Positions 11,399 through 45,253 of a stretch of 64,000 nt of DNA are shown here, in pieces (positions within the stretch are counted from its first letter, which is position 1; each line of letters opens with the position of its first letter). The notes below the pieces were generated by a model, which worked only from the letters and a program-made list of their open reading frames with translations, was not told the DNA's origin and did no database searches. This DNA is from Lepidodermella squamata. Its lineage: Eukaryota; Animalia; Gastrotricha. The position numbers and the translations under genes are program-made. Location: NCBI GenBank assembly GCA_047495785.1, contig JBLDXI010000010.1, positions 1,364,001 to 1,428,000 on the forward strand, read 5' to 3'.

Positions 11399-13096
11399 AT
11401 GCAAACTCTACAAGCTCCGCATTTCATGGCCGAATACGATGAGTCAATCGAAGGAGATTACGAAATTATGTCTTCTACGTCTATGACCACATCATGGGAG
11501 AACGGGTCTGTTGCAACAGTGGCGACATCATTCGGTTTCAACCCTACAACAACTCAAGACGTGAGCCATAGTAAAGAAAGTCCGAAGCAGGCCCCAGCTA
11601 TTCTTGTTGTCACTCTCGGCGGCATTCTCCTCGCAATTTTTGTCGCAGTAATGACCTTCGACTATTGCAGGCATCTTAGGAGATCCGGTTTACTCGAAAG
11701 ACGGCAAAATAACGAGAGTAGGGAAAAGGCGAGAAGAGAACGAGCCGCGACAATCACTGGCCGTAGGAGGTCCAGTTCCAGGCCTTCAATTTGCGTTGTG
11801 AGCGGTGTTTCGAATGAAAACCCGTCTTCAAATCAAGACGGCAGCTATAACGGACCTTACCGTGCTTCCTATACTTTAATTGACGAAGGCTCTCATCCGT
11901 TGATACCCATGACAGAACAGACCCCTTTGATCGCTCAGCCGCCCAAAACTAGGGAAGGCAGTTTAGTACAATCCGAGCCTCAGGAAGAGCAACCTTTAAT
12001 CACCCCGCCGAAAGTTGTTGCACCTTTTCAATATGGTACTTTTGATTCAGCTCTCGAGTTGCAGTTGTATTGCGAGGCCTCGAGTCAAGAGAATGAAGTT
12101 CGCTATTTCAGCCCACTGCCAATGATCGAATCATCTTTCTGCTCATCATTCAACATCAGCGAGCCGCCTATCAACCAAACCAAGGGTGCTCCGCCCGTTA
12201 CACCTCGAGATTTAACTCAGACCTTTCTTACTAAAACAAATTCGAGCCGAGCTGTGACATTTCTTATAGGCAATTCAGCTAATTCAGATATAAAATCGGT
12301 ATCGGACGAAGGATTGGGGTTGAGTCGAGGGGATTCAATAAGATCTAACGCTAGTCGGAGCCACAGGAACTCGAATGAGCAAACGCTAGTTTCGTCAAAT
12401 CTTCTTCAACCGCCCCCTTCCCCTCATTTCAAACAGACATTTGATTTATCTGGAAATCCAGCTAAACCGCGGTCCCTCAGTGTCACGAGTCTGGGCCAAT
12501 CGAACATCGGAAGTCGTAGTGAATCGATGCTATCCTGCGCTTCAGTTGTTACGATTGGTAGCTTCAGTGGGAAGCAAGATGTAACAGTATCCTGCTGGCG
12601 ATCTCTGGCTCTTGAATGTGTTAGTCCAACCTCGCAACATGCGTCTCAAAGATTGTCAAAATCCACTCCCGTTGTTCCAGCATCAGTTCGGCGAGAGAAC
12701 CCTCGCCGAAGTTTGAGAGAACTCGATCTTCCACCGAAAGGTTTCGATCCACACAATTTGACACTTCCAAGCCCGGCTGCTCCACCTTACAACCCTAATC
12801 TCGGCCCATACTTGGCCATACCCGAGCGAAGGATTCACACCTTCATGGACGTCTTTGCCAGTAAGTACAACATGTTCCTTTTGGAGAGGCAGAAGCAGAA
12901 AAAGCGACAAGAGTCTATCAGGCGAAGACGTCGATCGGTGAGACTCAGGAGTGATAGCAACGCCTCAACTCGGCTGAAGGCTCCAGTTCACCCGGATGAC
13001 GAACATCTGGAGGTTGAACTTGGCCATCACAGGGCTAGAATGTTGCTTAATGCGCTTCGTATACCTCTGAGCAGAGTAATGCCTCTTGGCAGGTAA
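11399..13096 (+). CDS. TM-DY family member A (single-pass membrane protein, long disordered tail)
   Basis: VVTLGGILLAIFVAVMTF-DYCRHLRRSG; C-terminus RARMLLNALRIPLSRVMP. Start could be 11399 or 11426. Confidence 0.75.
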   Translation: MQTLQAPHFMAEYDESIEGDYEIMSSTSMTTSWENGSVATVATSFGFNPTTTQDVSHSKESPKQAPAILVVTLGGILLAIFVAVMTFDYCRHLRRSGLLERRQNNESREKARRERAATITGRRRSSSRPSICVVSGVSNENPSSNQDGSYNGPYRASYTLIDEGSHPLIPMTEQTPLIAQPPKTREGSLVQSEPQEEQPLITPPKVVAPFQYGTFDSALELQLYCEASSQENEVRYFSPLPMIESSFCSSFNISEPPINQTKGAPPVTPRDLTQTFLTKTNSSRAVTFLIGNSANSDIKSVSDEGLGLSRGDSIRSNASRSHRNSNEQTLVSSNLLQPPPSPHFKQTFDLSGNPAKPRSLSVTSLGQSNIGSRSESMLSCASVVTIGSFSGKQDVTVSCWRSLALECVSPTSQHASQRLSKSTPVVPASVRRENPRRSLRELDLPPKGFDPHNLTLPSPAAPPYNPNLGPYLAIPERRIHTFMDVFASKYNMFLLERQKQKKRQESIRRRRRSVRLRSDSNASTRLKAPVHPDDEHLEVELGHHRARMLLNALRIPLSRVMPLGR

Positions 13097-13493
13097 CAAG
13101 GAGTCGATGATAATCAAATTTTGCGCGCTCAATTTTTGCTGCCTATGTTCAGATTATTCTTCGTTTATTTTTAATATCGTTTCTTGCACTAATTTGTCTT
13201 TATCGATAAATAAAAAATGTCAGAATCCTCATTTGCGAACTTTAAAATCTGCTGAAATTGAATTATGCAATTTGACCTAGTTATGGGTAATTATCCGGAC
13301 AGCATTGGCGAAATTGCCGAAATTACGCTGGGATCAATGCATTTAGTTACGTCAGATCTAAAAGTAGTTTCTGAATTCCATACTAATCTTCCGTGTGATA
13401 TCTTATTAAAACACCTGGATGTCTAAGAAGCCGACTCCGATCAAGCAAGATTAAGAAAACGTTTCAGTACACATCCTCAGTGCATCCAATGTG

Positions 13494-14108
13494 ATGCTTG
13501 TTGAAGACTTCGGCTACGGCTCCTTATCTTTAGAGTCCGGCATCATTTTCACAATTGGAGGTCTCTTCAATTTAATAGTTATCGTCGTGCTATTGGTGGA
13601 CTACGTTACTCACATGAGAGCCGCTGGCTATTTCGGAGGCAGAGTCGACACTTTTGCACGAAGACACAAAGTCAATGAAGATCATGCGAAAATTCGTAGG
13701 AAATCAAGCGTGAAAGCAGCTGGGAAGACACTGCGAAAAGCAATTACCGGTTGTTTCGACTGTGAACAGGGAGACGTTAGCTCCGAGGGTACAATGCGAA
13801 CCCGTAGGGCGTCAATCTATACGCTCGGAGAAGCTGCAAGCTCTTTCGCGAGAGAACTATACGATTTAAGGTTGCCTACTCCTGCTCCTCCTGTTCTGAG
13901 TCCTGCTTACTCTCATCCCCGACTGACTCCCTCAAACAGCTCTTCAAGTGCTACAATGTCACGACAAGTCACCCCGAAGGGAAAGATGCGCAGAAATCAG
14001 ACGCAGCCCGACTTGCAGTTGGAACCGGCTGTAAAAAGAGTCTGGACGTCTTTCGGCTTCTTCACGGGCAGGCAAGAACAACGAGCTGAACCTAACCTCA
14101 TAATGTAA
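13494..14108 (+). CDS. TM-DY family member B
   Basis: IFTIGGLFNLIVIVVLLV-DYVTHMRAAGYFGG; LRLPTP motif; AATAAA about 30 bp after the stop. Confidence 0.75.
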   Translation: MLVEDFGYGSLSLESGIIFTIGGLFNLIVIVVLLVDYVTHMRAAGYFGGRVDTFARRHKVNEDHAKIRRKSSVKAAGKTLRKAITGCFDCEQGDVSSEGTMRTRRASIYTLGEAASSFARELYDLRLPTPAPPVLSPAYSHPRLTPSNSSSSATMSRQVTPKGKMRRNQTQPDLQLEPAVKRVWTSFGFFTGRQEQRAEPNLIM

Positions 14109-14412
14109 TTTTACTCAACGTTCTAAAGTCTAAAAAATAAAATAGACAGGCAAAATGAATATATCGGCCTCTTATTGAGTGAGCACTGACCAGAGCTTAA
14201 TTAAGCCCACACGATCCGTTAGAACTCGGAGACTTAATGACTTCTTTAAATCAGCAATCAAAAGAAAGGCTCCTTGAACTTGAGTGTCATAAGGGCTACT
14301 AATTCCTATCAAAGACCGCTGCGTCCAGTAATTTCAATCAAGGACTCATATCTAATTCCTCAGTATTCTGTCCATTGCCATCAAATAGTTCAATTCAAGC
14401 CACTTGAAAGGT

Positions 14413-15627
14413 ATGACGCTCGATTTTTGGCGGGAATCTATGGAACAGCCTTTGCAACTGTTTGTACGCTGTCCTGGCAACCTGACAGCCTTCTGCGAAG
14501 TCGCTAATTCCGCCTTCTTAGAAGTGCGCTTGAAAGCCCAGCTGGACATTCACCACCATCACGACGATGCTGATCAACCTGATGACGATGATGATGGGCC
14601 GTACATTCCCGATGACGATATCGATCTCATAATCGGTGGATTCCCGCATTCTCAAGGGAGCTATGCGATTCTGACTGGCTTAGCTTTCTGCACCGTTGTC
14701 ATTGCTCTGCTGATTGTTGATTACGTCCGTTTCATGCGAGCTCGAGGAGTTTTTGGGCCAAATGCTGAAAGCATAAAATCTCGCCGGAATCGTTATCAAC
14801 GATCTAACTATTCCGAGTTAGTCTTGCCCTAAAAATATGAATATATATAATTGTTTCACTCAATATTCAGGGATGATGAATTTGATCCGCCCTCATTTCG
14901 AGAGCCGTCTATTGCAGGAGAAGAAGTAGAGCATCAAACACCGGTGGATCCAATGTTCGAAGGTCTGGAGAATCTTGAAATGCCTGTTGTGGAGTATCCG
15001 GTGTCGAATACCCAGCACAAAGCACCGAGTACCATTGCATCAATTAGTGACGAAAGCCATGTTACAAAAACTATGCTCTCATCCTACGACAGCGATTTTG
15101 GAGATCCGAAGCCAGTTTTAAGGCGGCGCTCTGGTGGACGCAGGAGGGCAAGCGTTGCTCATTATAGGAAACGGCGATCATCTCTAACCAAACTAATGGA
15201 AGTGAAGGTCGACCAATCTCAAAAATCGGAGGAAGTATTTGAGGATGAGCCTGAGAATAATGTAAGCATACAAGGAGGGATTGAAGTTGGGACAAGATCC
15301 ATCGCAGTACCCCCTGCATTGGTGGAAGAGGAAGAGCAGGTTGAGCCGAAGAAAAGCGGTAAAGAAATTGAAGAATCTGCCCCTTCAATTGTTGTGACGG
15401 AGAGGTCCTTCGACGCTGACGATCCCGAAAGCTGGACTCTCCCTGTGCCTGAATTCTCTAATTCTGTTGATACACAGAAAAAGCCGGATCAAGTCAAGAA
15501 ACCAATTGTCAGACGACGCAATGAAGGTGAAAAAGATTCGCCAAAGTTGCGAAGACCGAAAATGCTACTCAGCTTCCTTGGCAGTGGTCTCAGTCGCATT
15601 AACGAAGACCGATCGGGCAATAATTGA
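14413..15627 (+). CDS. TM-DY family member C (2 exons)
   Basis: YAILTGLAFCTVVIALLIV-DYVRFMRARGVFG; in-frame intron 14817-14870; C-terminus RRPKMLLSFLGSGLSRINE. Close paralog of member I. Confidence 0.85.
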
Positions 15628-16053: not shown

Positions 16054-17112
16054 ATGGAAGGTGACCTTGATGAGAGTCTGCCGGAAAACGCGACGGATGG
16101 CTCGCTGTTGATCCTCAGCATTGGTGGAGCTTTCCTTATTGCTGTTTTAACCATTCTAGTTTTCGACTATCTCGGCTTCATGAGGTCTGCTGGTTACTTT
16201 GGTGGCAAGGGCAGCCGTTACGCCCGAAATCGTAGACATCGACTTGAACGACTTAAACGCTTCGAAAGCGAGACTTCAGACACTCGAATTTCAAGGTGCC
16301 ACCTCTGCCATTGCGGTCGCACTGCAGAAACACCGGAAAGTGTTTACGTGCCGAAGACATCATTACGTAATGAGTCAGTCGGTTATTCGGAGAGTAACAG
16401 CAGTGATTATCAGGACAACGGATCTCAAGATTTGGACTACCTCGATAACCTAAAAATGCCAACTCCAGATATTTCCCGAACCGCGTCTACTATATCCACG
16501 ATGGGGACTTTGAACATTGATTTTAGCAAGTTTAACCGTCCTCTAGTGAAACACGCTTCGACAAGATCAATCCAGTCTGAAGGGGAAAAGACTAGGCGAG
16601 GAATCGGTCTATTCGGGAGATGGAAGACAAATCACAGTCAAGATACGACCGAATCTGTGCCAAGGCGTCGCTTGAATAGAATTGCTCCCCAGCCGTTACA
16701 GAGAACAAAGCCGCTAGCAATAGGAGCCTATCGGCACGAACCTCTTCAAACTATTCCTTCCTTACCAGCCGAACCTGTGATGCCGGCAATATACCGAGAT
16801 GACCCTGGCAATACGTCGACTTACAGGCCGGATGGTATCAAGAGAACTTTCAGACGCCCATCAGAGGCCTCAAGTAAACGAAAGCGGTCTTTAATGGGTC
16901 AAACCAGTGATGTGTATGCAAATAAGAGGAAACTCATGCAGGCTGAATTCGATCGGAAACGAAAAATAGACGATTTGCGGAAGAAGCAGCGGTCTCGGGC
17001 TTCTAAAACACCTGAAGCTGCGACAGATGTTTTTGGCATAGGAAGACCACGAATGATGTTGACTCAGCTGGGTTTTACCCTCAGCAGAGTTTCTCCTATA
17101 TCGAACCAGTAA
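16054..17112 (+). CDS. TM-DY family member D
   Basis: LILSIGGAFLIAVLTILVF-DYLGFMRSAGYFGG; C-terminus GRPRMMLTQLGFTLSRVSP. Confidence 0.8.
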   Translation: MEGDLDESLPENATDGSLLILSIGGAFLIAVLTILVFDYLGFMRSAGYFGGKGSRYARNRRHRLERLKRFESETSDTRISRCHLCHCGRTAETPESVYVPKTSLRNESVGYSESNSSDYQDNGSQDLDYLDNLKMPTPDISRTASTISTMGTLNIDFSKFNRPLVKHASTRSIQSEGEKTRRGIGLFGRWKTNHSQDTTESVPRRRLNRIAPQPLQRTKPLAIGAYRHEPLQTIPSLPAEPVMPAIYRDDPGNTSTYRPDGIKRTFRRPSEASSKRKRSLMGQTSDVYANKRKLMQAEFDRKRKIDDLRKKQRSRASKTPEAATDVFGIGRPRMMLTQLGFTLSRVSPISNQ

Positions 17113-17850: not shown

Positions 17851-19071
17851 ATGAACATGTCATCTCTCGTTCCACAGTTCCAGCTCATCTTGAACTGCAC
17901 TGCCGATAATGCGGACGTCTGCCGAATTCCACCCTTCAAATTAGTTAAAATCGGACCTTGGAGCGACGATGATAGTAATGACGATGACGATGATTCTTCG
18001 CCAGATGACCTACCCGGTCTCGGAGAGTTTTCCTTCAAGACACCCACCGACTACATTTTTACAGTTGGATTCACCTTCCTGATCTCTGTTATCCTAATCC
18101 TAACAATCGACTACGTGAGGCATATGAGATCGTGCGGATTTTTAGGAGGAGAGAAGGTCTATTCATCGCCGGGCGCTCTGAAACGAATGCAGAGGTAAAA
18201 TAGACCTTGGGCTTTTTCTATCTCTTTACACTTCTTTCTTCCTTCAAGTAGCCAAAATTCAGAGGATGATGACGAGCCTTCGATAGCCGATGCTATACCT
18301 CTATTTGAATTGCCCACACAGCAGCGATACAACGCCAATGAAACTGCTATTACAACTCCAGCTATCAAGTTACCAGCAAGCGGTGCCGCGTCCTCGTCGA
18401 ATTCAGGACGATCAACTGCACTTTACGAGGAAAAGTTTGGCGAATTGATGAAACTAGCGGATGAGCTCACCAAACATGATAGGGATGACGATTTAAGATC
18501 GCAATCTGCTGTTCAAGCCTTCCACAGGCCGAACATGGCTCGTGGCCCAATACGGGGACGAGATGTTGGCAGGGCTAGAAGGGTTAGGTCTAACTCAATA
18601 TCCCCTGTGATTCATGGTCTCATGTCACCTTATATTCCCAAGCGGGCTAACGAGCCTGAGAAACCTGAATTTGTTGGTAGTAGATCAAAGGATAAACTCC
18701 AGCATGGTTCTTCAATTTCTCTGACAGATTTTGGACGGCAGCCGAGCGCCGTTGCCTCACAAGCAGGCCAAATGGCTGAAAGCAAAGAGGAATCCTCTGC
18801 GCAAACTTCGACTTCATCAAGCGACTCTTCACCGAAGGCGGAATTCGAAATGGGAGACTTGCCCAGCCCCACGATGTCGCCTACAACCAAGATGAAAACC
18901 GAGCGATTTCGAACCGGTGAGCAGCTGTCGCTGGAGAAGAGCACTTCGCCGAAGAAAAGACGCAGCAGACATAATTCCGGAGAAAAAGGTGACCAGGTTA
19001 CAAGTAACCGAGCAGGATCCCTATTTCTGAGCTTGTTCGGGGGCTCTCGCGCTAAACCAAATGACCAATGA
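17851..19071 (+). CDS. TM-DY family member E (2 exons)
   Basis: IFTVGFTFLISVILILTI-DYVRHMRSCGFLGG. Intron 18195-18248 (tandem AAG-TAG acceptor, 18251 also in frame) joins the 18310-19071 ORF frame. Confidence 0.75.
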
Positions 19072-19495: not shown

Positions 19496-20656
19496 ATGGC
19501 AAGCGAGAGCTTGGGCGTAGACAGCCTCTCAACGGAATCCAGCGCAATTTTCACTGTTGGAAGCTCTTTCATCTTAGTCGTTATAATAGTCCTGGTCATT
19601 GATTACGTTTCTCACATGAGAAATGCCGGTTTCTTCGGTGGAAACATCGATTCATTTGCTAGAAAGCACAACTCTGCTCGCCATTCATCTCTTCACCTGA
19701 AACCTATCCAACAAATAGCTCTACAGAACAAAATGAAGAACAAACTCTCCATCTGTAATGGCTGCGGTCAAGGGGACGTTGAATCAGTAGAATCCGAGCC
19801 TTCACATAAGGAAGCATCTGTTATAATTGTTAACGAGAGTGAAGACCCGCTATATCAAGAAGTCAATGAATTGAGACTACCATCGCCTGTTTTCGAACAT
19901 TACCAACGTCCAGAGAGTGGCTTCAGGTCCCCGTCTTCTATAAATCGAGCTCCATCTGCTCAATCTACTCAGGAGTTAGAGTACGTGGACTCGTCAGGAC
20001 GACCATTCCCAACAAATCCTCAGAGAATGTTACGGCGGCATCAAACCGTCCAAAATTTGCTGCCAGTTAGGAAAGCCCAGCAGCGGGAATCGTCAGAAAA
20101 ATCGTCGACTTCTTTCGGGCTGTTCTTCCGCAAAAAGGCTCCTGAAGAGGAGACGAAGCCGAAACCTCCGATGCAAAGGAGATCTAGCACGATTTCACTT
20201 GTCCAGCCTTACCGCAGTTCAGTAACAGACATATCACCAGAGGATCTAGCTCGACTCCGGCAAATTGAAGCAGCTCGTCAGGTAAAGGAAAATCCGTATT
20301 TGGACAAAGTTCGCGAGGAGAGTGACGTTAATAGCCCACTTGAGAGCCTTGGCAGCCCGGATCAGCCCGGTCCATCGGGTCGTAAGCCTCTGAAATCCCA
20401 TCAGCCAAGGCGTGGCAGTGTATCACAATCTGCGAAACCTGAGGATGTTTATTCAAAGAAACGGTTGCTTGCAGATCAAGATCGGCACAAACGGAAAATT
20501 GAAACTTTGAAACGTGGCAAGAAGGCATCTATGTTGAAACAGAGCCGGAAGAGAAGCGAACCTGCTGACGCTCAAATAGTTCTGCACAAGCCAAAGACGC
20601 TTTTAACCGCGTTAGGAATCAACTTGGCGAAAGTAACTCCGTTTTCGGAGGGCTGA
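19496..20656 (+). CDS. TM-DY family member F
   Basis: IFTVGSSFILVVIIVLVI-DYVSHMRNAGFFGGNIDSFARK; C-terminus KPKTLLTALGINLAKVTP. Confidence 0.8.
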   Translation: MASESLGVDSLSTESSAIFTVGSSFILVVIIVLVIDYVSHMRNAGFFGGNIDSFARKHNSARHSSLHLKPIQQIALQNKMKNKLSICNGCGQGDVESVESEPSHKEASVIIVNESEDPLYQEVNELRLPSPVFEHYQRPESGFRSPSSINRAPSAQSTQELEYVDSSGRPFPTNPQRMLRRHQTVQNLLPVRKAQQRESSEKSSTSFGLFFRKKAPEEETKPKPPMQRRSSTISLVQPYRSSVTDISPEDLARLRQIEAARQVKENPYLDKVREESDVNSPLESLGSPDQPGPSGRKPLKSHQPRRGSVSQSAKPEDVYSKKRLLADQDRHKRKIETLKRGKKASMLKQSRKRSEPADAQIVLHKPKTLLTALGINLAKVTPFSEG

Positions 20657-21568: not shown

Positions 21569-22582
21569 ATGGATCCTAACGATACGAGATCAGAAGAAAC
21601 TTCAAGTTCTTTTCTTGGTCCTGGCCGTGACATTGATGTCGATTTCAATGGGTCTTTCGGCTATGTTATCACGTTTGGCTCGGCCTATCTCGGTCTAGTT
21701 ATTATCATTCTGATTGTCGACTACGTTCGTTGGATGCAAGCTGCTGGTTACTTTTGCGGTAAGGTCGATCCTTTTGCTCGAAAACATCGCACTGATCGAA
21801 AGAAGATGAGACGGGTATCTACGGTGGCATCCCTCGCAAGCAATACTTGGATGGCTAAACTCCACGTGCCGATGTATGATGACACGCCTAGTAAAGATCC
21901 CGAATCGGTGGATGGATCCGAAGCTATTTCTTCAACGTCATCTGCAGTCAAAACATATGTAACCCAACCCGATGAAGATATTGATGGCTTTGATCAAAAG
22001 TTGAGACTTCCCAGTCCAGACTTGAATGCGGCATTCTCGCATTACGCGGATCGAATGAGCATGTTCTTGAACCAGAGTGCTCGATCAACATCTATGAGCA
22101 ACGCTTTGTGGCATCAAAAGAAGTACCCTTCCTTCGGCAGCGTGCCCGTACAAATAGCTCGTAGACTTAAGAAGCCTGCGCACGTGGATGAACGTGGATC
22201 GGAACCTGATAGCAAGCCAGTGCTGCTCGGGATGTTCAGGCGCCGCGCAGAGTCTGAGGCTGGGGAGGCCAAAGTCGTTAATTCGAGAAGGCGTAACAGT
22301 CTTACTCTCACTAACTACCCTAACAGTGCTATTAGCCGGCTTTATTCGAGTCTACAGCCTGAAAAAGCGGTTGAGATCGTGGGATTGGGAGATAAACCGG
22401 CAATCGAACCTGATGGCTTACCGTTGAAATCAACCATATCAACGCCCCGGTCAGTACAGAAAACTCCGAAAAAGGCGAGAATCCAAAAACCCACTGCTAA
22501 AATGGTCCCGAAGCGCAGGACGAAACTCTTTGCTGCTAAGCCGCAATACAAGCCCGAATTTTCACCTGTTAAAGAATACTGA
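21569..22582 (+). CDS. TM-DY family member G
   Basis: VITFGSAYLGLVIIILIV-DYVRWMQAAGYFCGKVDPFARK; LRLPSP motif. Confidence 0.8.
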   Translation: MDPNDTRSEETSSSFLGPGRDIDVDFNGSFGYVITFGSAYLGLVIIILIVDYVRWMQAAGYFCGKVDPFARKHRTDRKKMRRVSTVASLASNTWMAKLHVPMYDDTPSKDPESVDGSEAISSTSSAVKTYVTQPDEDIDGFDQKLRLPSPDLNAAFSHYADRMSMFLNQSARSTSMSNALWHQKKYPSFGSVPVQIARRLKKPAHVDERGSEPDSKPVLLGMFRRRAESEAGEAKVVNSRRRNSLTLTNYPNSAISRLYSSLQPEKAVEIVGLGDKPAIEPDGLPLKSTISTPRSVQKTPKKARIQKPTAKMVPKRRTKLFAAKPQYKPEFSPVKEY

Positions 22583-23458: not shown

Positions 23459-24580
23459 ATGGACGACCCACCTTATTCAATAGATGGCGAGCTTCAGCCC
23501 TCTGCTTACGTTTTGATCGTCGGAGGTGGTATGATAGTAATGGTCATCGCTGTTCTCAGTGTCGATTACCTCAACCATCTGAAATTCTCTGGCGTTTTCG
23601 GTTCGAACTTCGACGCATTTGCTAGGTCAAAAACTCTAGCCTACAGCGTAACTGCTCGAAAGCGGAAGGCCAAATCGAAAGGGTGGTTTTGTTTCAAAAC
23701 GACAGCATCAAGGCCTGTCAGCACTAAATCATCTCGAGCTAGCTCCCGCAGCAACGTTTCGATCCCGTTTAATGAAGTCATTCAAATTGAGAACGACGAG
23801 CAAGAAATTACTCTGGAAAATACTGCTTCTGATTTGGATGGCCTAAGGCTGCCCACCCCACCGCCACCTATGCAATCGAGCAACAGTTTTGACGACCTCA
23901 GTGAGGCAGGTTCCAACATCAGCACTGTGACAGGGCTAGTTCGCCCGGATAAAATCGCTAAAATAAAACGTCAACAGCAAAGACCACCTTCAACAGAGAA
24001 TCCGACAAAATTCTCTCTCAGAATCGCGTTCAGACGGGGAAAGGAAAAACCCGAGTCGGATCAAGAAATCCGCAAGCCTTCCAAAATCCGTCGCACGAGT
24101 CAAGCTATTTCATCAGCTCTCAGTTTTAAGCCAACAAAACAGGAGATACGATTGGAAGATTATTTGCCGCCAAGGTTCGAAAGTCATGAAATCGTTGATG
24201 AAATAGCCCCGGAACAAGCAGCCCCAATTCCCAGTAATATTACTCCCCATCAAAGTCCACCTGTGAGGAGACGAGTTTCAAGTTTCAATGCCGGCAGCTC
24301 CTTTTACCGCCCGCACCTCGGAGTTTATCTTGCTCTACCTGATCGACGCATTCACTCATTTCAGGATGTTTTCGGATCTCAGTTTGACATGACCTCATCA
24401 CAAATTCTCAAAAAGCGGCTTATTGCTCAGCACCATGCGCATTTGAGAAATGCCCTATCTGACGCAGCAATGGATATGAGCGGAATTCCAGCGAATGAAA
24501 GGCGCGGCAGGCCGGCATTGATGCTTACTATGCTGGGAAGAAATCTAGCGAAGGTTAATCCTTTCCCCACGTTCGAATGA
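23459..24580 (+). CDS. TM-DY family member H
   Basis: VLIVGGGMIVMVIAVLSV-DYLNHLKFSGVFG; C-terminus GRPALMLTMLGRNLAKVNP. Confidence 0.8.
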   Translation: MDDPPYSIDGELQPSAYVLIVGGGMIVMVIAVLSVDYLNHLKFSGVFGSNFDAFARSKTLAYSVTARKRKAKSKGWFCFKTTASRPVSTKSSRASSRSNVSIPFNEVIQIENDEQEITLENTASDLDGLRLPTPPPPMQSSNSFDDLSEAGSNISTVTGLVRPDKIAKIKRQQQRPPSTENPTKFSLRIAFRRGKEKPESDQEIRKPSKIRRTSQAISSALSFKPTKQEIRLEDYLPPRFESHEIVDEIAPEQAAPIPSNITPHQSPPVRRRVSSFNAGSSFYRPHLGVYLALPDRRIHSFQDVFGSQFDMTSSQILKKRLIAQHHAHLRNALSDAAMDMSGIPANERRGRPALMLTMLGRNLAKVNPFPTFE

Positions 24581-25123: not shown

Positions 25124-26340
25124 ATGGCACTTGATATGCTGCGTTCTTCATTGTATGACCCTCTTCAATTGTTTGTACGCTGCCCTGGAAATGAAAGTTT
25201 CTTCTGTGAATTGGCCAATTCTGCTTCAATCAAGACACGCATGCCGAATCTGCTTGACAATCAAGATGCTGCTGATAACGAAACAGAAGACGACTACGAT
25301 GGGCCATACATCCCGGATGATGATTTGGGCCTAATAATCGGAGGCTTCCCACACTCGCAGGGGAGCTATGCGATTTTGACTGGCTTCGCGTTTTGCACAG
25401 TGGTGGTGATTCTTCTCTTCATTGATTACATTCGCTTCATGAGAGAACGAGGTGTCTTCGGACCGAAGGCTGAAGGCGTAAGAGCTCGGCGCAATCAGAG
25501 AATGTTTCCACAAGCTTCGACCCCAAGTGACGAGTAAGTCTATTAATTTAACAATTTTTCATGTCAATCTTACATATGATTTCAAGGTCAGAGTCGGAAT
25601 CCCCTGACAATCGGGAGCAGTCTATTGTTGGAGAAAAAGCCCTCCAGTCTTCGCCTCTACACCCCATGTACCAGGGATTAGAAGGTCTGGAAATGCCAAG
25701 TGTTGAACCCTCGCAATCTAGTGCGCCCACTAAGGCTCCTAGCATTGTTGAATCTGTCAGTAGTCCGGTTGCTGAAACAATTCTCTCAACTCATGACAGT
25801 GAGGTTGGCGAGATGAGACCTGCTCGTAGGCGGAGATCAGTCAAAAGCCGGAGAAATAGCATGATGCTTTACAGAGGAAGACGTCCTTCACTGGCTATCA
25901 AAGTTCAAACCCGCGCGAAACTCAATTCAAATATTGGCAACTCCGTAATTTCCGAGATTGCAATCAATGAGGATCGCCCTGACATTGAAGCTAAACCAGA
26001 AACAGAAGGCAACCCTACTTCTAACGAGCCAGAATCAGCCGAAAAGACTGAGGAGATGAAGAAGGAAGACCAAAGCGAAACAAAAGCCTCTGGCACTCCG
26101 AATCTAGTACCCGAGAAAAGTTTCGATGTAGATGACCCTGACAACTGGACCCTTCCCGAACCTGAAAGCACGTCCTCGGTCGAGCCGCTGAAAAAGTATG
26201 AGCAAGTCAAGAAGCCTATCATAAGGAAGAAACAAGAGGCTGAGAGGAGTTCCCCAACATTTCGCCGTCCGAAAATGTTACTAAGCTTCCTTGGCAGTGG
26301 GCTTAGTCGCATCAATGAAAACAGATCCGGAAATAACTGA
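25124..26340 (+). CDS. TM-DY family member I (2 exons), paralog of C
   Basis: YAILTGFAFCTVVVILLFI-DYIRFMRERGVFG; intron 25534-25586 in the same phase and region as in C; near-identical C-terminus ending RSGNN*. Confidence 0.85.
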
Positions 26341-26689
26341 ATGACATCATTCAATCTTATGCTATAATTCGTTTTAGTAAACGATGTTTGATAGGATGCA
26401 ATTTAGAATAAAAATGTTGCGTGGTAATTATTCAATCATCCCAGATTATATTTTTTTACGTTCAACCTGCGATTTCTGAGACACTTCGCAGTAAAAACTG
26501 TTCGAGTTATGACAGAGGTAACTGAATTTATCGAGGATTCATCAGCCAGTGTGGTTCTGGTGATAGGCTCAGCAATGCTGGCCTTTCTTCTCTGTGTTCT
26601 AATTGTCGACTACCATTGTAGTCCGGCTTTGCAGGGTCAAAGTCCATTTTATTCATCATGTGTGTTTTTATCGTTTATATAATGTGCCA

Positions 26690-26721
26690 CTGGTGGTGCG
26701 GTCGTGAGGTGGCGAGGTGGT
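26690..26721 (+). repeat. Left subterminal GGT(G/C)GTG-type tandem block of the transposon
   Basis: ctggtggtgcggtcgtgaggtggcgaggtggt; first 21 nt match the reverse complement of 29901-29921 at 20/21. Confidence 0.8.
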
Positions 26722-33062: not shown

Positions 33063-34069
33063 ATGAAGCTACATATTTATACCTTCATTTTTATGATATC
33101 TTTTTCACTGGCTAAAAGTGGTAAATCGGCTTTCGATTGCGATAATTTAAACTCCATTGATTGATTTATTTCTTAAAAGTCAGCCAGAAAAACGACGATC
33201 TCATGGATGCGGTAAAAAATATCGATGAAATTCGTGTCGAAGCTCTTTTGAACGAAGGCGCGGATCCTAATGCGTTGGATAAAGATGGCAATACGCCGCT
33301 TCATGTCGCCGCTTCGAATGACGACGCGGAAATTGTTATGCTGTTGCTATCGCACAATGCTGATACTATCAAACTCAACCGGGAAAATCACACCGCGCTT
33401 TATGAGGCCCTTAAAAAGTGCTTGCAGAAAACGTCTGATATTCTGGCTAAGATGGCTAGTGGAGACCCAGCTTTACGAAGACATGATCCTGAAAAAGGAC
33501 TTACTCTACTCCATCTCGCGGCGGGCTGTGATATTGCATCTGCTGCGCAATCCTTGGCACATCTTGGGGCCAATCTGGAACTTGCGAATGACGAAGACAT
33601 GACTCCTTTAGTCTACGCGTGCTATAAAAAGGGATGGAAAGTGGCAAAGGTTTTGATCGAAACCGGTGCTTATGTCAACGCTGGGGCGTATTATTACAAT
33701 GACAAAAACGCCTTGAATTACGCCGCTGGGCATAACAACATTGACATGATGAAGTTTCTCTTGCAAAACCGCGCGGAAATTGAAGGTCAGGGCCGGGAAA
33801 CTCCGTTTTTGAGCGCGTGTTACGGAAATGCGAAGGAAGCGGCTGAATTTCTGCTGCATCACGGCGCCGACAAGAATAGGAAACACCCTAACGGCAACAA
33901 CTGTTTGCACTTCATCAACGAACAAAATGGCAGTTACAGCTTTTTTAGATCTATGGTCGAGCGCGGTGTTGATATCAATGCTGTTGGTAATCAGGGAAAA
34001 ACCGTTCTTGGCACTGCAACAAATCCAGAAATAATCGCTTACTTAAAGTCACTCAATGCAAAGCCGTGA
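33063..34069 (+). CDS. Ankyrin-repeat protein with signal-peptide exon (315 aa, 2 exons), paralog of 31208-32551
   Basis: Exon 33063-33120 encodes MKLHIYTFIFMISFSLAKS; intron 33121-33179 joins in frame. Aligns with the C-terminal ~60% of the upstream ankyrin protein (DGNTPLH, HT.L.E.L..C, ETPF..AC). Confidence 0.85.
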
Positions 34070-34276: not shown

Positions 34277-35152
34277 ATGGATCCTCAAACTCCGCATGAC
34301 ATAAAACGAGAGGTTGTGTCTTTCTTCAAGGAGGCCTTCGATGCCGACCATCCTATCAAAGATGAGGACTTCTACGACTCAGCTGCTTGGGTTCTCATCG
34401 TCGGCGGTATCGTCATATTTATTTTCCTTATAGTACTAGCAATCGACTATTACCGGCATCTTCAAAGAACCGGAATTCTCGGCGAAAAAGCTTACTATCA
34501 AGCAATGCTGCGTCAGGCGAGCGAACGGAAAGCTGCGAAAACTAGTCGATGTTCTGGATTATTTTCGTGCGCGGAACGACAAAGTTTGAACACAGAAATA
34601 GGCACAAAGTCCAGGGTTGAGTCTGGTCATCACGTCTCGGCTCGAATGGGTCCGATTGACAGAATATTTAGGCGAGGACATACCAACCAAGATGAAGCCT
34701 CCCAGACACCTAGACGACTGGCTTTTTCTGCTCCGGATCTCAACAGGAACGAAATCTCAATCGAGCTAGCATGTCAACGCAATTGTTCTGCGTCGCAGCA
34801 GGAAGGAATCAAGGACTCGCAACAGCTGAGCTCTAGAACTGATATGGCTAAGGTAGCATCGAATTGGCAGTCCACGAGCTTCTCAGACATACAATCCCTT
34901 GACGAGGTCGATCACTCATCTCGAAGCTTTTCTGTAGGAGCTAATCGGTCCTACTCAGCCGAGGCCATTCGCAGAAGAACCACCCGGATCGATCTGAGAT
35001 TCAACGCTGGAGATGTTGATCTTCATAGCCTGCTAGAAATGTTGGCAAGTCAATTTACGCTTCACGTGATGAGACGGCGGAAACGCTGGAACTGCAGGCG
35101 GAGGAACAAAACTCTGAAAAATCGAATTCATCACTCAGAAACTCTGCTGTAA
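34277..35152 (+). CDS. TM-DY family member K
   Basis: WVLIVGGIVIFIFLIVLAI-DYYRHLQRTGILG. Confidence 0.75.
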   Translation: MDPQTPHDIKREVVSFFKEAFDADHPIKDEDFYDSAAWVLIVGGIVIFIFLIVLAIDYYRHLQRTGILGEKAYYQAMLRQASERKAAKTSRCSGLFSCAERQSLNTEIGTKSRVESGHHVSARMGPIDRIFRRGHTNQDEASQTPRRLAFSAPDLNRNEISIELACQRNCSASQQEGIKDSQQLSSRTDMAKVASNWQSTSFSDIQSLDEVDHSSRSFSVGANRSYSAEAIRRRTTRIDLRFNAGDVDLHSLLEMLASQFTLHVMRRRKRWNCRRRNKTLKNRIHHSETLL

Positions 35153-35407: not shown

Positions 35408-36247
35408 ATGATGAATTCCTCAGAGAATGTACCCCTGTCAGGACTTTTTCGCGAGCTTGCACGAAATTTATCGACCGATGATTCCGATGGCTCGGTAACT
35501 AAGGTGGAAGTGGTGTTCGAACGGAACGAGTTGAATATGTTCCTATTCTCAGCTGTCTACGTTGTTGGCATTGGCGGAATTGTTATTGTCATGCTTGTTT
35601 GTGCGATGCTCCATGATTACTACAAAATCTTCAGCAATGTGAAAATTTTCTCCGATGACGAAAACTCATTCAAACAAAGAAGGAGGAGCGTTGTTCCAGT
35701 TAAGAAGAATCCGCATGCGGCGTCGCGAATGATGGCATCTGGATCTAATCAGGACATGGCCTCTGGAAACTTTGCACGAAGAAATTTTCTCAGCCCACGG
35801 CCTGTTGAGAGAAGTAGCTTGGAGGCAGATATCAAGACCCTTACTCCTGTATCCATGATGGAAGAAATCGACTGTGGCCTGTTTCAAACTTTCTCGGATC
35901 CTTTCAAGTCGCGTGACGAATGTGGGTCGCCCCGCTCTTGCGATTCCAGTGTATGGGGAAGTACTGATTCTGACTCTGGTCATCCTAATTCGAACCCTGA
36001 ATCTATCGGAAAGCGCGAATCACCGATAAGATATCCAAGCTTTGTACAAATGCCGGAGAGCCAAACACCAACACGTACCGATTCAACATTTTCTTTTTGT
36101 GAAAATGAGCGCCGTTTGCAGGAAGAAATCGCTGCCGGCAATAATGGCCTCGATAAAGATTCTGGAGGTTGGTCGCTTTTAGGCTCAATCAAAAGGATGT
36201 TGTCAAAATTTCTGAATCGCAACCGGGTTCAGCAAGACATGTGTTGA
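35408..36247 (+). CDS. TM-DY family member L (divergent)
   Basis: YVVGIGGIVIVMLVCAMLH-DYYKIF; Ser-rich tail ending in an amphipathic segment LLGSIKRMLSKFLNRNRVQQ. Confidence 0.7.
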   Translation: MMNSSENVPLSGLFRELARNLSTDDSDGSVTKVEVVFERNELNMFLFSAVYVVGIGGIVIVMLVCAMLHDYYKIFSNVKIFSDDENSFKQRRRSVVPVKKNPHAASRMMASGSNQDMASGNFARRNFLSPRPVERSSLEADIKTLTPVSMMEEIDCGLFQTFSDPFKSRDECGSPRSCDSSVWGSTDSDSGHPNSNPESIGKRESPIRYPSFVQMPESQTPTRTDSTFSFCENERRLQEEIAAGNNGLDKDSGGWSLLGSIKRMLSKFLNRNRVQQDMC

Positions 36248-37506: not shown

Positions 37507-38904
37507 ATGAATAAGCTATCGCAAATATTTTTTGTGAACTCAGCAACTACAGAGGACGATTACGTTGAAACACGCGCTTGGACGATGCAATCTCAGAGAC
37601 CGATGTTAAACTTGGACGCAATGCGGATAAAATCCGAGTCGAATATCAGCTTTCAGGATTCATCCAGTGCCAATTTCATTGTTGTTCTATCGGTCGGCTG
37701 TGTTGTCTTGGTCATAATTCTGGTAGTTGTAGTATGGGACTACTGTCTCCATCTACATCGAAGCGGGGTGTTTCGCCACATATCGAGAGAGGAACGGCGG
37801 AGAAGCAGAGCTAGATTTTACGAAAGAGTGAAACATCGCGAGTCGAAGCGAAGAACTGGGGCAGTTTTTATTACGGAGGATCCGCAGTCAGTCTCGACCC
37901 ATTGGCGAGTTGGCGGTGGCCATATAAGAGCTAGCGATGCAGACTCGTCAATCAACCTTAAAGAACTACCGTGCCCCTTTTCTCCGAACCACTCACCAGG
38001 CGATGCGTCAATTCGCTCAAGTTTCAGGGAAAGATCCAGTACACAAGGGAAAGATTCATTCAGCAACCGATTATCGCCATTTCGAAATCGTGGGAGCGCG
38101 ATTCAAGATTCTGACCCAGATGCTACGCTTAATCAATTTTCATCCTTATCATCATTTACAATGGATGAATCGGATGCATCGACAAGTTGTGGACTCGAAA
38201 TGTCGCAGAAGGAGTCTTTGATCAAGCAAATAAGTCCTGACAGTGCTGTTACTACTTCAAGTAACAACACCACTTATCGAATGCGGGTTTCTCTGGAGGA
38301 CGAAACAAAAGGCAGGCCGATAACTCAATTGAATGATATGATTCTAGTGAGAGCGCAGTTTCTCGCGCCACCCAAGCCTACTTATAGGAGTATGAAAAAC
38401 CATGTGAGCCAAAAGTCAAAAAGTTGGGACGACCTACCCTCGACGCGCTTGCTTCCCGACCCGATTTCAAGGGATGAATACAGCGATACTGGCTCGCCAA
38501 AGCCGAATGGTACAGACGCATTCAGGCGGCTCAAAGGGCAATCATTCGACGGAGTAAATTTGCCGCCTCCCATCCCAACATTCAATCTAGATAGGCGATT
38601 TTCTGTTTCTGACCAAAATACAACAACCGTGTCTGAGTTGTTCCTGCAGAAGTATCAAATGTTTCTACTCGAACGTTCAAAGCAACGCAAGAAAGCTGAG
38701 ATCCTATACAAGAAACGGCGTCGCATGGCAGCTTTCGAGGGAGTAGTCGCTCCAAACCCTATGGAACACAAGCGGACTTTCCCTCCGGGTAATCAAAACC
38801 GACGCCGTTCTTTCGGCCATGGCGAAGAAGGCCCAAGAAAGACAAAAATGTTAATCCATGCAATGCGAATACCACTTTCCAAGAATTCTTCATTATTACA
38901 CTGA
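37507..38904 (+). CDS. TM-DY family member M
   Basis: VVLSVGCVVLVIILVVVVW-DYCLHLHRSGVF; KYQMFLLER; C-terminus KTKMLIHAMRIPLSK (matches member A). Confidence 0.8.
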   Translation: MNKLSQIFFVNSATTEDDYVETRAWTMQSQRPMLNLDAMRIKSESNISFQDSSSANFIVVLSVGCVVLVIILVVVVWDYCLHLHRSGVFRHISREERRRSRARFYERVKHRESKRRTGAVFITEDPQSVSTHWRVGGGHIRASDADSSINLKELPCPFSPNHSPGDASIRSSFRERSSTQGKDSFSNRLSPFRNRGSAIQDSDPDATLNQFSSLSSFTMDESDASTSCGLEMSQKESLIKQISPDSAVTTSSNNTTYRMRVSLEDETKGRPITQLNDMILVRAQFLAPPKPTYRSMKNHVSQKSKSWDDLPSTRLLPDPISRDEYSDTGSPKPNGTDAFRRLKGQSFDGVNLPPPIPTFNLDRRFSVSDQNTTTVSELFLQKYQMFLLERSKQRKKAEILYKKRRRMAAFEGVVAPNPMEHKRTFPPGNQNRRRSFGHGEEGPRKTKMLIHAMRIPLSKNSSLLH

Positions 38905-40694: not shown

Positions 40695-42593
40695 ATGACA
40701 ACCATAGCTGTTAATCCAAATCAGCCGCTCTACGTCAACACCGAGCAACGGAATGCAATATCAGCGCAAATTGAACCGCAGAATTTGGCAACGTCACCAT
40801 TTCTTGTCCTTTCGATCGGTTCTTTCATTTTATCAGTCGCTGTTGCTGTTATGCTTTTCGACTACTGTAAACACCTTAAACGGAGCGGTGTTTTCGACCG
40901 GCATCGCAGCAAATCTACGTACAACAAGTACCGAGAAGAGGCATTGAAAACTGTCGGGGAAATACCAAGTCAAGTTGACGTTTTAGGCCCTAAGCTCATC
41001 ACTGAAATTGGAGCCGTTTCTTCCGAAGACACGGAGCCTCTTGTCCCAAAAATCGACTCGCCCCCTGAAACAGGAAGTGAAAACAAAGGGCTGGAAATTG
41101 ATGAGAGAAAGGAAACAGCTCCTGTTTCTTCGAACTCCTTTACTCGGATTTCATCCCGCTCAGCCTCGAGAGGGTGCTTTGTTAAACAAGCATCTCTCGA
41201 ATCGTCAAGCCAGCCAAGATTCCTTACTCCGAAGGCTCGTTTGATTGAGACTTCGAAAAGTAACTCTCAAATGGCGTTACTACTCAAGAATTATGGGACA
41301 TTCGACTCAGAACTTGAGCTTCAGTTTTTCAACGAGACAATTCCTGCTATTGATTCTGTTACAAGATACCTACCAATGAAAGGCCTTACAGTCTCTCAGA
41401 ATTTGTTGCTGAAAGCTGAATCGATTGATGAGAATTCCGTGTACTCCATAACTCCAAATCTGCCGTTGAGTACACATGTCTCGATGGGTTCAGTTCATCA
41501 ATCTTCATCCAGCCACACCCTGAAATCTTCGTCTAGAATGGATGATTCATCCACTGCTGCGATTTTCATCGGCGGAGATACAGGGTCTGATACCGATATT
41601 CAAAACTCATCGTCATGCTCGTCCTACCTAGTTCTTCCCGGCATTACAAAACAAATAACGATGGAAGATTCGCCTGAGAAAGAAGTCGAGATAGATAGAA
41701 CTCATCGATCAATTCTTAAAGATCAATATCTCAACTCATCGACAGATCCATTGTTGATCGACACGCCGCGGCATGCAAGTGAAAGTTCGATAGCCGTGCA
41801 GAGGGGCAGTTGTAACTCACACCCTGCTCATATGACGGAGCGAGCTAACAGCGATACAGTCGATCTGATGCGATCAGCAGCTCAACAACACAGATTTTTA
41901 TTCACCGGCATTAGCGCCGATGCAATAGCCAACAACAGCAGCTTATCAGTATCTTCCAATTCTACGACAATGCAGCGAACCCCTAATGCCATGTCAAGTC
42001 AGACCTATCTCAGCCCGCCAAAGTTTCTTGCTCTGTCTTGTAAGAAATCTACGAGTGATACCTCAGGATTAGTCGATATGTCTAGTCGGAATAAAACCGA
42101 GCCTATAAGCCCTACTCCCAGCCCTATGTCTTCAGATGAAGCTAGTCTATCAATGACTCGAGCCGCTTGGAGTAGCGCCTCAAGTTACGTTTCTATCTTA
42201 GAGAGTGACAACATCCTTATTCAGTCGCCATCCTCCAGGAGGAGTAAAAGTAGCAGTAAGCTCAGTGGAAGTGTTGGCTCGAGGCATTCAAGGCGTTTAA
42301 TGCGCCAGGCCGCTTCTCCAATGTATCAAACCGCCCTGGATAAGATGACAGCGAGAATGGCTGAGTTGTATCAATTTGCTAAGCCGCAGAAGCCTGAACG
42401 AGTCACATCTTTCAACGACGTGTCCGAGGAGGATAAGCGGAAACTGCTGTTAAGCGAGGCTCAAAGCAGGCGGAAGCGAGCTGAGGCCATTCGGCGGTTG
42501 AAACGGCGCTCCCAGCGCCCAGGTAGTCCGTCAGAACGCATCAGAGCGAGATTGCTTATCAGCACGTTACGGGTCACGCAAAAGCAAAAGTAA
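40695..42593 (+). CDS. TM-DY family member N
   Basis: LVLSIGSFILSVAVAVMLF-DYCKHLKRSGVF; YGTFDSELELQ; C-terminus RARLLISTLRV. Confidence 0.8.
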   Translation: MTTIAVNPNQPLYVNTEQRNAISAQIEPQNLATSPFLVLSIGSFILSVAVAVMLFDYCKHLKRSGVFDRHRSKSTYNKYREEALKTVGEIPSQVDVLGPKLITEIGAVSSEDTEPLVPKIDSPPETGSENKGLEIDERKETAPVSSNSFTRISSRSASRGCFVKQASLESSSQPRFLTPKARLIETSKSNSQMALLLKNYGTFDSELELQFFNETIPAIDSVTRYLPMKGLTVSQNLLLKAESIDENSVYSITPNLPLSTHVSMGSVHQSSSSHTLKSSSRMDDSSTAAIFIGGDTGSDTDIQNSSSCSSYLVLPGITKQITMEDSPEKEVEIDRTHRSILKDQYLNSSTDPLLIDTPRHASESSIAVQRGSCNSHPAHMTERANSDTVDLMRSAAQQHRFLFTGISADAIANNSSLSVSSNSTTMQRTPNAMSSQTYLSPPKFLALSCKKSTSDTSGLVDMSSRNKTEPISPTPSPMSSDEASLSMTRAAWSSASSYVSILESDNILIQSPSSRRSKSSSKLSGSVGSRHSRRLMRQAASPMYQTALDKMTARMAELYQFAKPQKPERVTSFNDVSEEDKRKLLLSEAQSRRKRAEAIRRLKRRSQRPGSPSERIRARLLISTLRVTQKQK

Positions 42594-43766: not shown

Positions 43767-43800
43767 TAATAGGGTATTAAGAATAATAGGGTATTAAGAA
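43767..43800 (+). repeat. 17-bp direct tandem duplication
   Basis: taatagggtattaagaa x2. Confidence 0.8.
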
Positions 43801-44539
43801 TGGGTCATAGTGCCTTCTCGATTTTAATTACCCAGCAACCAGCCTGTAATTTCTTAGTAATATGAGAGGTCCAAGTAAAGATAGCTCTTTTAACTATTGA
43901 TTTCCGTTTACTCGTGAGATTTATTAAAGGATGCCGTAATTTCAAAGCTCCCATTACATTTACATTTACATAAAAAAAACAATGAAAAACAAACAGCAAA
44001 AGGTGTGAAAAGTCACACTTTTGTTGCATCTGCAAGTTGGAACTGATTACAAAAATCTCCTCTGTTTTTTCTGCGAGTAGAGGCGTCTCATAACAACTTC
44101 TCATGCCTTTGACCATCTTCACCGCATTAATTTGCATTTCTATTTCATAGCTCTGACTGCCGGTACCTTAGTTTTTTGTGGTTAGTGATATCAAGCCTCG
44201 AATTACTGAGGCGATTGCTATAGCGTATTTTCGGAGATAAGGTGAGAACCAGTGGGCGGCCTGTGATCGCGCGATCAATGGCTCTCATACACACCAGTTC
44301 ATAACCCGTGTCGTCACATGATTTGATACGATGTTGTCTCAGAATAAATAATTCAAGTAGGAATATCAGTGCCTCGATGGCTCGCCCAAGTTTTCTACAG
44401 TGTAGTAGCACTGAAACGCAGCTGCATAGTAAATGATCCGCTCGACGCGCCGTGATTGCTTTAACGATCGCGTGAGATAGTAGTATCAGACACGACGGCG
44501 CACTAGAATCGCAAATCGCTATCCATTCTTAGCTGCGAC

Positions 44540-45253
44540 ATGCCGTCGTGCGTACAGCCTATTCATATACAAGCCACCCTACTGCAACTTTCCGCTTTTG
44601 TGACCCCGCTAACTATCGCGCATGGCTACGGCACGAGACGCGCTCCGAACGCCGCCATGAACGTACGATTAGGGTCAAATATCACGCAACCATTCTTCGT
44701 CAACAACGGTGCCTATTCGAGAAACGACCAATCAAACCCGCCTAAACGAGCTGTTACCTCCCCGGTCCTTGTTTTATCCATCGGAAGTATCGTGCTGTCA
44801 ATTATAGTAATGGTTATGCTAGTCGACTACTGCAAACACCTACGGAAAACCGGTGTACTTCAGCGGCACTTGAAGAAAGAAGCATACGAGAAGTTTCGTC
44901 GAGAGGCCCTATCCAAAGTGCCTACAGTGGACATACCTACCGTTGAAGTGCATAAAAGCCCGTCGGATAATTACGAAGTCGAGCACTTGCTTGATGCAGA
45001 GAACGCACCTGTTGTATCAAAAGTAGAAAGCACTACAGAAACTGCGGACAAAGATACGCAATTTCCATTGACTTTATCTAAATGCACCCAGACGAGTCGG
45101 CGAGCGACTAGGCATTCTTCGCTGTCAAGCTATGGCCAGCCTAGTATACCGTTGAAAGCTGTTACTTCAAGCCCGCAGAGAATGCGGCCGGTTCTTGAGC
45201 ATCAAAAGCGAACTTATGGAACTTTCGAGCTGCAACAGGTCGAACAAACGTGA
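44540..45253 (+). CDS. TM-DY family member O (short paralog of N)
   Basis: LVLSIGSIVLSIIVMVMLV-DYCKHLRKTGVL...YEKFRREAL; ends at YGTFELQQ. Start could be 44540 or 44657. Confidence 0.75.
   Translation: MPSCVQPIHIQATLLQLSAFVTPLTIAHGYGTRRAPNAAMNVRLGSNITQPFFVNNGAYSRNDQSNPPKRAVTSPVLVLSIGSIVLSIIVMVMLVDYCKHLRKTGVLQRHLKKEAYEKFRREALSKVPTVDIPTVEVHKSPSDNYEVEHLLDAENAPVVSKVESTTETADKDTQFPLTLSKCTQTSRRATRHSSLSSYGQPSIPLKAVTSSPQRMRPVLEHQKRTYGTFELQQVEQT

Follow-up and report, generated by a model that had tools for sequence, protein, structure and literature searches.

A tandem array of fifteen genes in the gastrotrich Lepidodermella squamata encodes an undescribed family of putative single-pass membrane docking scaffolds

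What kind of protein is made by fifteen co-oriented genes that share one membrane helix and carry no domain with a name? The question is raised by a window of 64,000 nucleotides from Lepidodermella squamata (contig JBLDXI010000010.1, here C10, positions 1364001-1428000), a species belonging to the gastrotrichs, which are among the least studied animal phyla. Within positions 11399-45253 of this window a first-pass annotation had proposed 15 plus-strand genes of an unrecognised membrane protein family, and all 15 open reading frames (ORFs), m1 to m15, were confirmed where it had placed them. Our analysis shows that these genes belong to an undescribed family with about 20 genes in this genome and orthologues in at least two other animals. 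We propose that the family consists of single-pass membrane proteins that act as putative membrane-anchored docking scaffolds, with the N-terminus outside the cell and a disordered, motif-bearing tail inside, a reading to which we assign a probability of about 0.55.

The members were taken from stop-to-stop translation of the plus strand, with the first in-frame ATG as the start; for m3, m5, m9 and m10, searches and alignments used the exons one at a time, and the lengths and composition of these genes were counted on the concatenated exon translations. In 15/15 members a 22-residue hydrophobic stretch (mean Kyte-Doolittle value 1.8-3.0) is followed directly by D-Y, which stands at the cytoplasmic end of the helix, and then by the motif xx[HFW][ML][RKQ]xxG. 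A 48-column alignment of the helix and the D-Y block was used as a profile (A2) against the whole assembly (121.2 Mb, 151 contigs), where it matched 14 of the 15 members at expectation values (E) of 1.5e-19 to 6.8e-16 and the fifteenth, the N-terminal piece of m10 (window 26539-26613), at 2.8e-4; because of these genome-wide match values the array lies far beyond chance. Columns G13, D27 and Y28 of A2 are invariant and G36 is nearly so, within a consensus of V-x3-G-x3-L-x2-V-x2-VL-x2-DY-x2-HMR-x2-G-x-FG, and the initial claim of a common transmembrane (TM) segment followed by an invariant D-Y is thus borne out. The further claim that every member continues into G-h-[FL]-G held in part, since the last glycine is kept within the inner members m2-m11 and not outside them, and the motif of m12 is degenerate. 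D-Y is invariant within the array and is N-Y or T-Y in family members elsewhere. As a working definition of the family we used an [ST]xG N-out TM helix followed by [DN]-Y-x-x-[HFWY]-[ML]-[RKQ]-x-x-G, and this pattern fits 15/15 array members, the paralogues on contigs C1 and C10, and the database relatives P0001-P0004 and P0008. Conservation along the helix is periodic, with a peak at 90-100 degrees whose power is reached by 339 of 10,000 column shuffles, and this periodicity points to a single conserved side, as is characteristic of helices that pack against one another; this side would run from the small-x-G near the outer end to a D/N-Y-xx-H-[ML]-[RK] collar and end at a Gly.

Past this block, the proteins continue into basic tails of 142-577 amino acids (aa) with 15-25 % S+T, 13-19 % R+K and 1-9 % P, in line with the Ser/Arg/Pro-rich tails of 140-580 aa first described. 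The same description had called the tails barely alignable, which proved not to be so: at least four common islands, in a fixed order, are visible in the full-length and C-terminal alignments. Island a is an acidic-aromatic [DE]x[YF]xxLxLP[ST]P situated 90-130 residues past the helix (for example ELYDLRLPTPAPP, DLDYLDNLKMPTPD, EVNELRLPSP and LDGLRLPTPPPP); island b is YGTFDSxLELxhY, present in m1, m14 and m15; island c, [SF]xDV[FY]xxKYxMFLLE, opens a basic helix of about 35 residues (RRKRAExIxxxKRR); and island d is the C-terminal +x+MLLxxL[GR]xxL[SA][RK]VxP (also +x+MLLxxL+xPL[SA]+V). A profile of islands c and d (A5) matched 10 of the 15 array members at E-values of 2e-29 to 6e-13. This C-terminal block also occurs in three members of a second cluster and in P0001-P0005; it is absent from m2, m7, m11 and m15, and weak in m12. 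AlphaFold2 (AF2) modelling of m6 with the family alignment gave two confident elements alone (predicted template-modelling score, pTM, 0.27). The helix at residues 8-44, with a predicted local distance difference test score (pLDDT) above 90, spans the TM segment through DYVSHMRNA and ends at the conserved Gly, and the helix at 321-354 (pLDDT ~90) is the basic helix; the remainder is disordered, with no globular domain.

The N-termini measure 11-80 aa and are net acidic in 14/15 members (-1 to -14), so that the short acidic N-termini first described as frequent are close to universal. Nine of the 15 N-termini carry N-x-S/T sequons, and those of m3, m5 and m9 carry Cys pairs. Signal-peptide-like N-termini were seen in m15, in the m14 orthologue P0004 and in an ORF of the SRA contig L045. 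Ahead of its first ATG, m14 likewise has 55 further codons in open frame (40530-40694), and this stretch is hydrophobic and signal-peptide-like, resembles the N-terminus of P0004 and contains no ATG; a start codon would therefore have to be supplied by an exon further upstream or in some other way, for instance by a trans-spliced leader. The branch of m14 and m15 probably has a signal peptide, and the assertion that the family has none fails for this branch and its orthologues. An N-out, C-in orientation is the best reading because of the acidic N-termini, the sequons and Cys pairs, the signal-peptide-like segments and the basic disordered tails; most members would be type III proteins and the m14 branch is probably type I. 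The N-out single-pass layout proposed at the outset agrees with these features and with the confident AF2 helix.

Relatives of the array were found both in this genome and in other animals. A second cluster, whose co-oriented members are more divergent, lies on the minus strand of the same contig (C10:1126000-1140446, loci L021 and L044), 225-238 kb from the array. Its clearest member, at 1138935-1140446, reads ..LFNYIVYLRESGYF.., ..DVFTSKYRLFQEDKRKRQK.., ..KTRMFLNAMRINLAKILF; members at 1135596-1137044 and 1133163-1134038 were found with the C-terminal block profile, a fourth at 1130635-1131636 has the same motifs on inspection, and two further ORFs have, on visual inspection, the look of divergent single-pass proteins. 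A gene resembling fatty-acid desaturases adjoins this cluster. Contig C1 carries a singleton in which LIVNYFLHMRRNGFF precedes LDFGLPPMPSP (E 3e-5), and contig C24 perhaps holds another.

Searches against described families returned no name, as the first-pass annotation had anticipated when it recognised no domain. Scanning of Pfam (hmmscan, E <= 1) with 10 full-length members and 15 C-terminal blocks gave nothing consistent, and scattered sub-threshold matches (e.g. Sema4F_C, 17 bits, in m1 only) were rejected as basic low-complexity sequence. Protein Data Bank (PDB) searches with the family profile A4 and with A5 yielded none apart from dystrobrevin at E 0.4. A word-indexed protein search with m6 found no match, and one with a 12-row cross-species alignment recovered P0002 alone and nothing new. 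A profile search beyond this genome, of the kind proposed initially, was made with A4: hmmsearch, run exhaustively over 1.84 billion representative proteins, returned six at E <= 1e-3, none of them named. The match to an annotated Pfam family of known function that was to refute the initial claim did not turn up at E <= 1.

The six relatives come from three ENA metagenome assemblies (ERZ23486764, ERZ23486787 and ERZ27332993) and the Logan assembly of SRR21279711. P0001 is the orthologue of m1 (33-43 % identical) and P0004 and P0005 are those of m14 (33-43 %); P0002 is the orthologue of m13 (36 % over the full length), to which P0003 is also related, and P0006 and P0008 match the contig C1 paralogue. 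At 33-43 % overall identity the orthologues retain the motif islands. Their contigs carry ordinary metazoan genes, among them arrestin, COMM, lipase and amino-acid permease. On contig L028 an m13-like gene stands next to an m14-like gene in the same orientation, which is also the arrangement of the window, and on L045 an m14-like N-terminus and helix come after an m13 orthologue; besides this m13-m14 pair, no flanking genes are common to the window and the metagenome contigs. Two peculiarities of these records were noted. CCCTAA/CCTAA-type repeats at L045 3400-3600 immediately follow a GTAAGT donor that closes the m14-like helix, and they may be telomere-like or may have arisen in assembly; the called form of P0002 still includes a phase-2 intron of 60 nt (GTTAGT..CAG) within its C-terminal motif. 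So far the family has been seen in this animal and a few related ones.

In the tree of the helix block, m2-m9 form an inner clade (ultrafast bootstrap, UFboot, 94) without a counterpart in the database, while m1 and m13-m15, the outer members, cluster with orthologues from the other assemblies. The inner clade may have expanded at the species level, or it may have gone unsampled elsewhere, and it supports local duplication, so the origin by tandem duplication proposed for the array stands. The rapid diversification proposed alongside it does not: synonymous sites are saturated even for m3 and m9, the closest pair (synonymous differences per site, pS, 0.69-0.79 vs nonsynonymous, pN, 0.24-0.32), as they are for all other paralogue pairs, and the orthologues of m1, m13 and m14 in other species are 33-43 % identical. 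ORFs of up to 632 codons stay open, and AATAAA or ATTAAA is found within 230 nt past the stop codon in 15/15 genes, vs 19 % of random 230-nt windows. Ten allelic variants of m4, from alternative-haplotype contigs (X1), comprise nine synonymous third-position changes and a single nonsynonymous one (S8N). As judged from codon comparisons, the duplicates are old and are kept by purifying selection, because synonymous sites are saturated, pN is below pS and orthologues are retained at 33-43 % identity; growth of the array was by ancient tandem and segmental duplication.

How such proteins might work can be set out conditionally. The constant helix and juxtamembrane module would fix the protein in the membrane, through self-association or a common membrane partner, and the tail motifs would recruit cytoplasmic partners by way of serine/proline-directed phosphorylation or of a C-terminal peptide that binds a hydrophobic groove. 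This recruitment would not run via phosphotyrosine, and the variable spacers between motifs would tune reach and specificity. The nearest look-alikes by protein-language-model features (0.78-0.90) are C1orf185, TMIE, vaccinia A36R, human cytomegalovirus (HCMV) UL132 and LIME1, all of them membrane-anchored with disordered tails. A more specific arrangement, to which we give a decidedly small chance, would attach the proteins to the membrane at both ends, by the N-terminal TM helix and by a C-terminal polybasic helix with the amphipathic MLLxxLxxxL peptide, and the disordered loops would use Ser/Pro-directed motifs to organise a cortical or signalling structure peculiar to the one lineage, probably the gastrotrichs, to which the family has so far been confined; phosphotyrosine would play no part in this. 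If that were true, the ~20 paralogues would form a diversified repertoire analogous to, but separate from, the vertebrate transmembrane adaptors.

Several observations weigh against the scaffold proposal. The look-alike scores do not exceed the 0.9 lead threshold and rest on fewer than 170 shared features, the number that true family members usually share at the least. The tail motifs match none of the curated linear-motif classes tried, and the helical periodicity of conservation is just modestly significant (p ~0.03). The starts are those of the first in-frame ATG, and m14 at least is probably incomplete at its 5' end. Finally, X1 is a DNA run, in which depth is flat at ~100 over genes and spacers alike, with no joints, and no RNA run was found to contain the m2-m5 stretch. 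The exception to the flat depth is window 17400-17799, where two bins reach 750 and 378 as against ~100 elsewhere, a sign that the m4-m5 spacer contains a multicopy element.

Four other explanations were weighed against the scaffold proposal. The main rival, which we consider unlikely, is that the proteins serve a multi-pass membrane complex as single-pass subunits, auxiliary or regulatory, in the style of KCNE, FXYD or TMIE. Docking onto a channel, transporter or receptor would then be the task of the conserved helix face and the D/N-Y-xx-H-x-R collar, and modulation or trafficking of that partner the task of the tail. This rival would account for the concentration of the strongest conservation, including the invariant Gly and the interfacial Asp/Asn, in the TM helix and the first 12 cytoplasmic residues, for ectodomains that at 11-80 aa are too short to bind a ligand alone, and for the TMIE cluster among the look-alikes (0.82-0.86). 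Known auxiliary subunits are, however, short-tailed, whereas here tails of 140-580 aa retain four islands across species; no Pfam match to KCNE, FXYD or TMIE (ISK_Channel, ATP1G1_PLM_MAT8, TMIE) was obtained at E <= 1, and neither the array nor its flanks contain a gene that would be a candidate partner. Only a slim chance is left to the view that these proteins link membrane and cytoskeleton in the way of syndecan, neurexin or glycophorin C, with the juxtamembrane Y-x-x-[HR]-x-R-x-x-G-x-[FY] as a FERM/4.1 site. The spacing of Y0, basic residues at 3-5, G8 and an aromatic at 10 matches that of the genome's own syndecan (LVYRMRKKDEGSY), a resemblance at the level of a motif, yet PF01034 matches other loci (contigs C20 and C48; 82.8 and 25.7 bits) and none in the array (0/10 members at E <= 1), hhalign of the block profile against the TM-cytoplasmic segments of the genome's syndecan and neurexin-like genes gave probabilities of 1.3 % and 2.3 %, and the C-termini (e.g. 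..VMPLGR, ..VSPISNQ, ..VTPFSEG, ..RSGNN) are not PDZ ligands of the EFYA/EYYV type. For want of support from either PF01034 or these hhalign comparisons, the lead of a FERM-binding motif like that of syndecan and neurexin was dropped.

The two remaining explanations are largely refuted and carry next to no weight with us. That the ORFs arose by chance or form a decaying pseudogene array might be suspected from the splitting of m10 by a transposon, from the lack of the C-terminal block in m2, m7 and m15 and from the degenerate motif of m12; against this stand the nine-to-one ratio of synonymous to other allelic variants, pN well below pS with saturated synonymous divergence, orthologues elsewhere that keep both motifs and synteny, canonical introns, and poly(A) signals past 15/15 stop codons. 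A viral or mobile-element origin would fit the feature scores of 0.79-0.84 to the A36R and UL132 clusters and the presence of a transposon inside the array, but neither viral family gave a Pfam match, the transposon is an insertion into m10 and not a carrier, the GC content of the array matches that of the surrounding genome, the genes have spliceosomal mini-introns, and the contigs of the orthologues hold arrestin, COMM and amino-acid permease.

The members and their neighbours are collected in the table below. Eleven members are single-exon genes; m3, m5 and m9 form a subgroup with a longer N-terminus, a Cys pair and an intron ~30-35 residues past D-Y.

Table. Members of the array, the transposon in m10 and adjacent genes (positions in the window)
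Feature	Position	Strand	Remarks
BTB-BACK-Kelch gene	7888..10113		upstream of the array; several very short introns
m1	11399..13096	+	565 aa, single exon; outer type (DYCRHLRRSG); carries YGTFDSALELQLY, PYLAIPERRIHTFMDVFASKY and the basic helix, C-terminal RARMLLNALRIPLSRVMPLGR
m2	13494..14108	+	204 aa; short, inner type (DYVTHMRAAGYFGG, LRLPTPAPP, FGFF); without C-terminal block
m3	14413..15627	+	exons 14413-14816 and 14871-15627; intron 14817-14870, 54 nt, GTTAGT..CAG, phase 2; N-terminal Cys pair; nearest paralogue m9
m4	16054..17112	+	352 aa, single exon
m5	17851..19071	+	exons 17851-18194 and 18249-19071; intron 18195-18248, 54 nt, GTAAAA..AAG, phase 2
m6	19496..20656	+	386 aa; member chosen for the AF2 model
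m7	21569..22582	+	337 aa; inner type; without C-terminal MLL motif
m8	23459..24580	+	373 aa; inner-type block with m1-like island YLALPDRRIHSFQDVF and C-terminal RPALMLTMLGRNLAKVNPF
m9	25124..26340	+	exons 25124-25533 and 25587-26340; intron 25534-25586, 53 nt, GTAAGT..AAG, phase 2; sister of m3
m10, N-terminal piece	26509..26613	+	MTEVTEFIEDSSASVVLVIGSAMLAFLLCVLIVDY; ends exactly at DY, where the transposon starts
transposon splitting m10	26614..30020	.	~3.4 kb; outside the family
m10, tail	30082..30816	+	MRAAGFFGGEIDLFARR ... AMFLTPFGRLMRNV; resumes with MRAAGFFGG
ankyrin-repeat gene	31208..32548		inside the array
ankyrin-repeat gene	33203..34066		inside the array
m11	34277..35152	+	291 aa (DYYRHLQRTGILG)
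m12	35408..36247	+	279 aa; degenerate juxtamembrane motif (HDYYKIFSNVKIF)
m13	37507..38904	+	465 aa; outer type: THWRVG, ELFLQKYQMFLLERSKQRKKAEILYKKRRRMAAFEG, KTKMLIHAMRIPLSK
m14	40695..42593	+	632 aa from first ATG
m15	44540..45253	+	237 aa; short m14 paralogue, stops just past the YGTF..ELQ island
collagen triple-helix and NIDO-domain gene	45282..47186	-	directly past m15

The transposon in m10 has subterminal inverted repeats (26650-26721 and 29890-29963) and two ORFs, at 27652-28221 (a weak tnp2 match, E 2.4e-4, below the cut-off) and 28502-28951. An unexplained stretch of ~60 nt, closed by a polypyrimidine tract and CAG, separates the right end of the transposon from the tail of m10. Between DY and MR the gene is three codons short of expectation, and removal of the transposon by splicing was rejected, as there is no in-frame GT donor beside DY. 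Because of both, m10 is probably broken in this haplotype.

Among the neighbours, the signal-peptide-like MRSALCLILYLLLNATAS opens the first of the two ankyrin-repeat genes, an uncommon start for a protein of this sort, and the second gene resembles the C-terminal half of the first. The region of the collagen and NIDO gene has a GC content of 52-53 % vs ~43 % elsewhere. The BTB-BACK-Kelch gene is not syntenic with the contig that holds the m1 orthologue.

Lineage-specific membrane protein families, single-pass ones included, are common and are expected in newly sequenced phyla. The present family is ordinary in kind and new in content, and by itself opens no long-standing question. Its value lies in being a cleanly delimited, Pfam-ready new family that combines a sharply conserved membrane module with ordered short linear motifs. 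In the main text of the gastrotrich genome paper the terms "orphan" and "gene families" do not occur (PMC11660948).

Set beside known systems, the array proteins resemble several in layout. C1orf185/DUF4718 and TMIE (PF15842 and PF16038) are the best named look-alikes (0.82-0.88), being small single-pass proteins with basic cytoplasmic tails, but they share 138-158 features, score below 0.9 and gave no hmmscan match at E <= 1. The viral type Ib proteins A36R and UL132 are alike in the N-out signal-anchor layout and the tail rich in linear motifs (0.79-0.84); homology is not detectable, and the array consists of cellular genes that have introns and whose orthologues occur in related animals. 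Syndecan, neurexin and glycophorin C are likewise single-pass proteins with the same Tyr-basic-Gly-aromatic spacing past the helix, whereas the array proteins do not match PF01034, have tails 3-10 times longer and do not end in a PDZ-binding C-terminus.

The comparison made by the first-pass annotation was with immune transmembrane adaptors, and it is apt as far as layout goes. The leukocyte adaptors (LAT, NTAL/LAB, PAG, LIME, SIT and TRIM) have the same short N-out terminus, mostly without a signal peptide, the same single TM helix and a long disordered tail with docking motifs, and the LIME1 cluster is among the look-alikes. The likeness does not extend to the docking chemistry. The array proteins lack CxxC, the helix being followed by DY[CVLIY]x[HFW] with a single Cys in m1, m13, m14 and m15 only; their tails are poor in Tyr (1.0-3.2 %), with 0-3 YxxPhi and 0-1 YxN motifs for SH2 docking per protein, none of them conserved in the alignments; and the LAT, LIME and PAG models of Pfam found no match in the hmmscan of 10 members at E <= 1. 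Their motifs are instead based on Ser/Pro, on basic residues and on Leu, and their genes stand in tandem. The same solution, a signal-anchored helix joined to a motif-bearing disordered tail, is found in vertebrate immune adaptors and in viral proteins, and the gastrotrich array would thus offer an independent case for the evolution of scaffolds.

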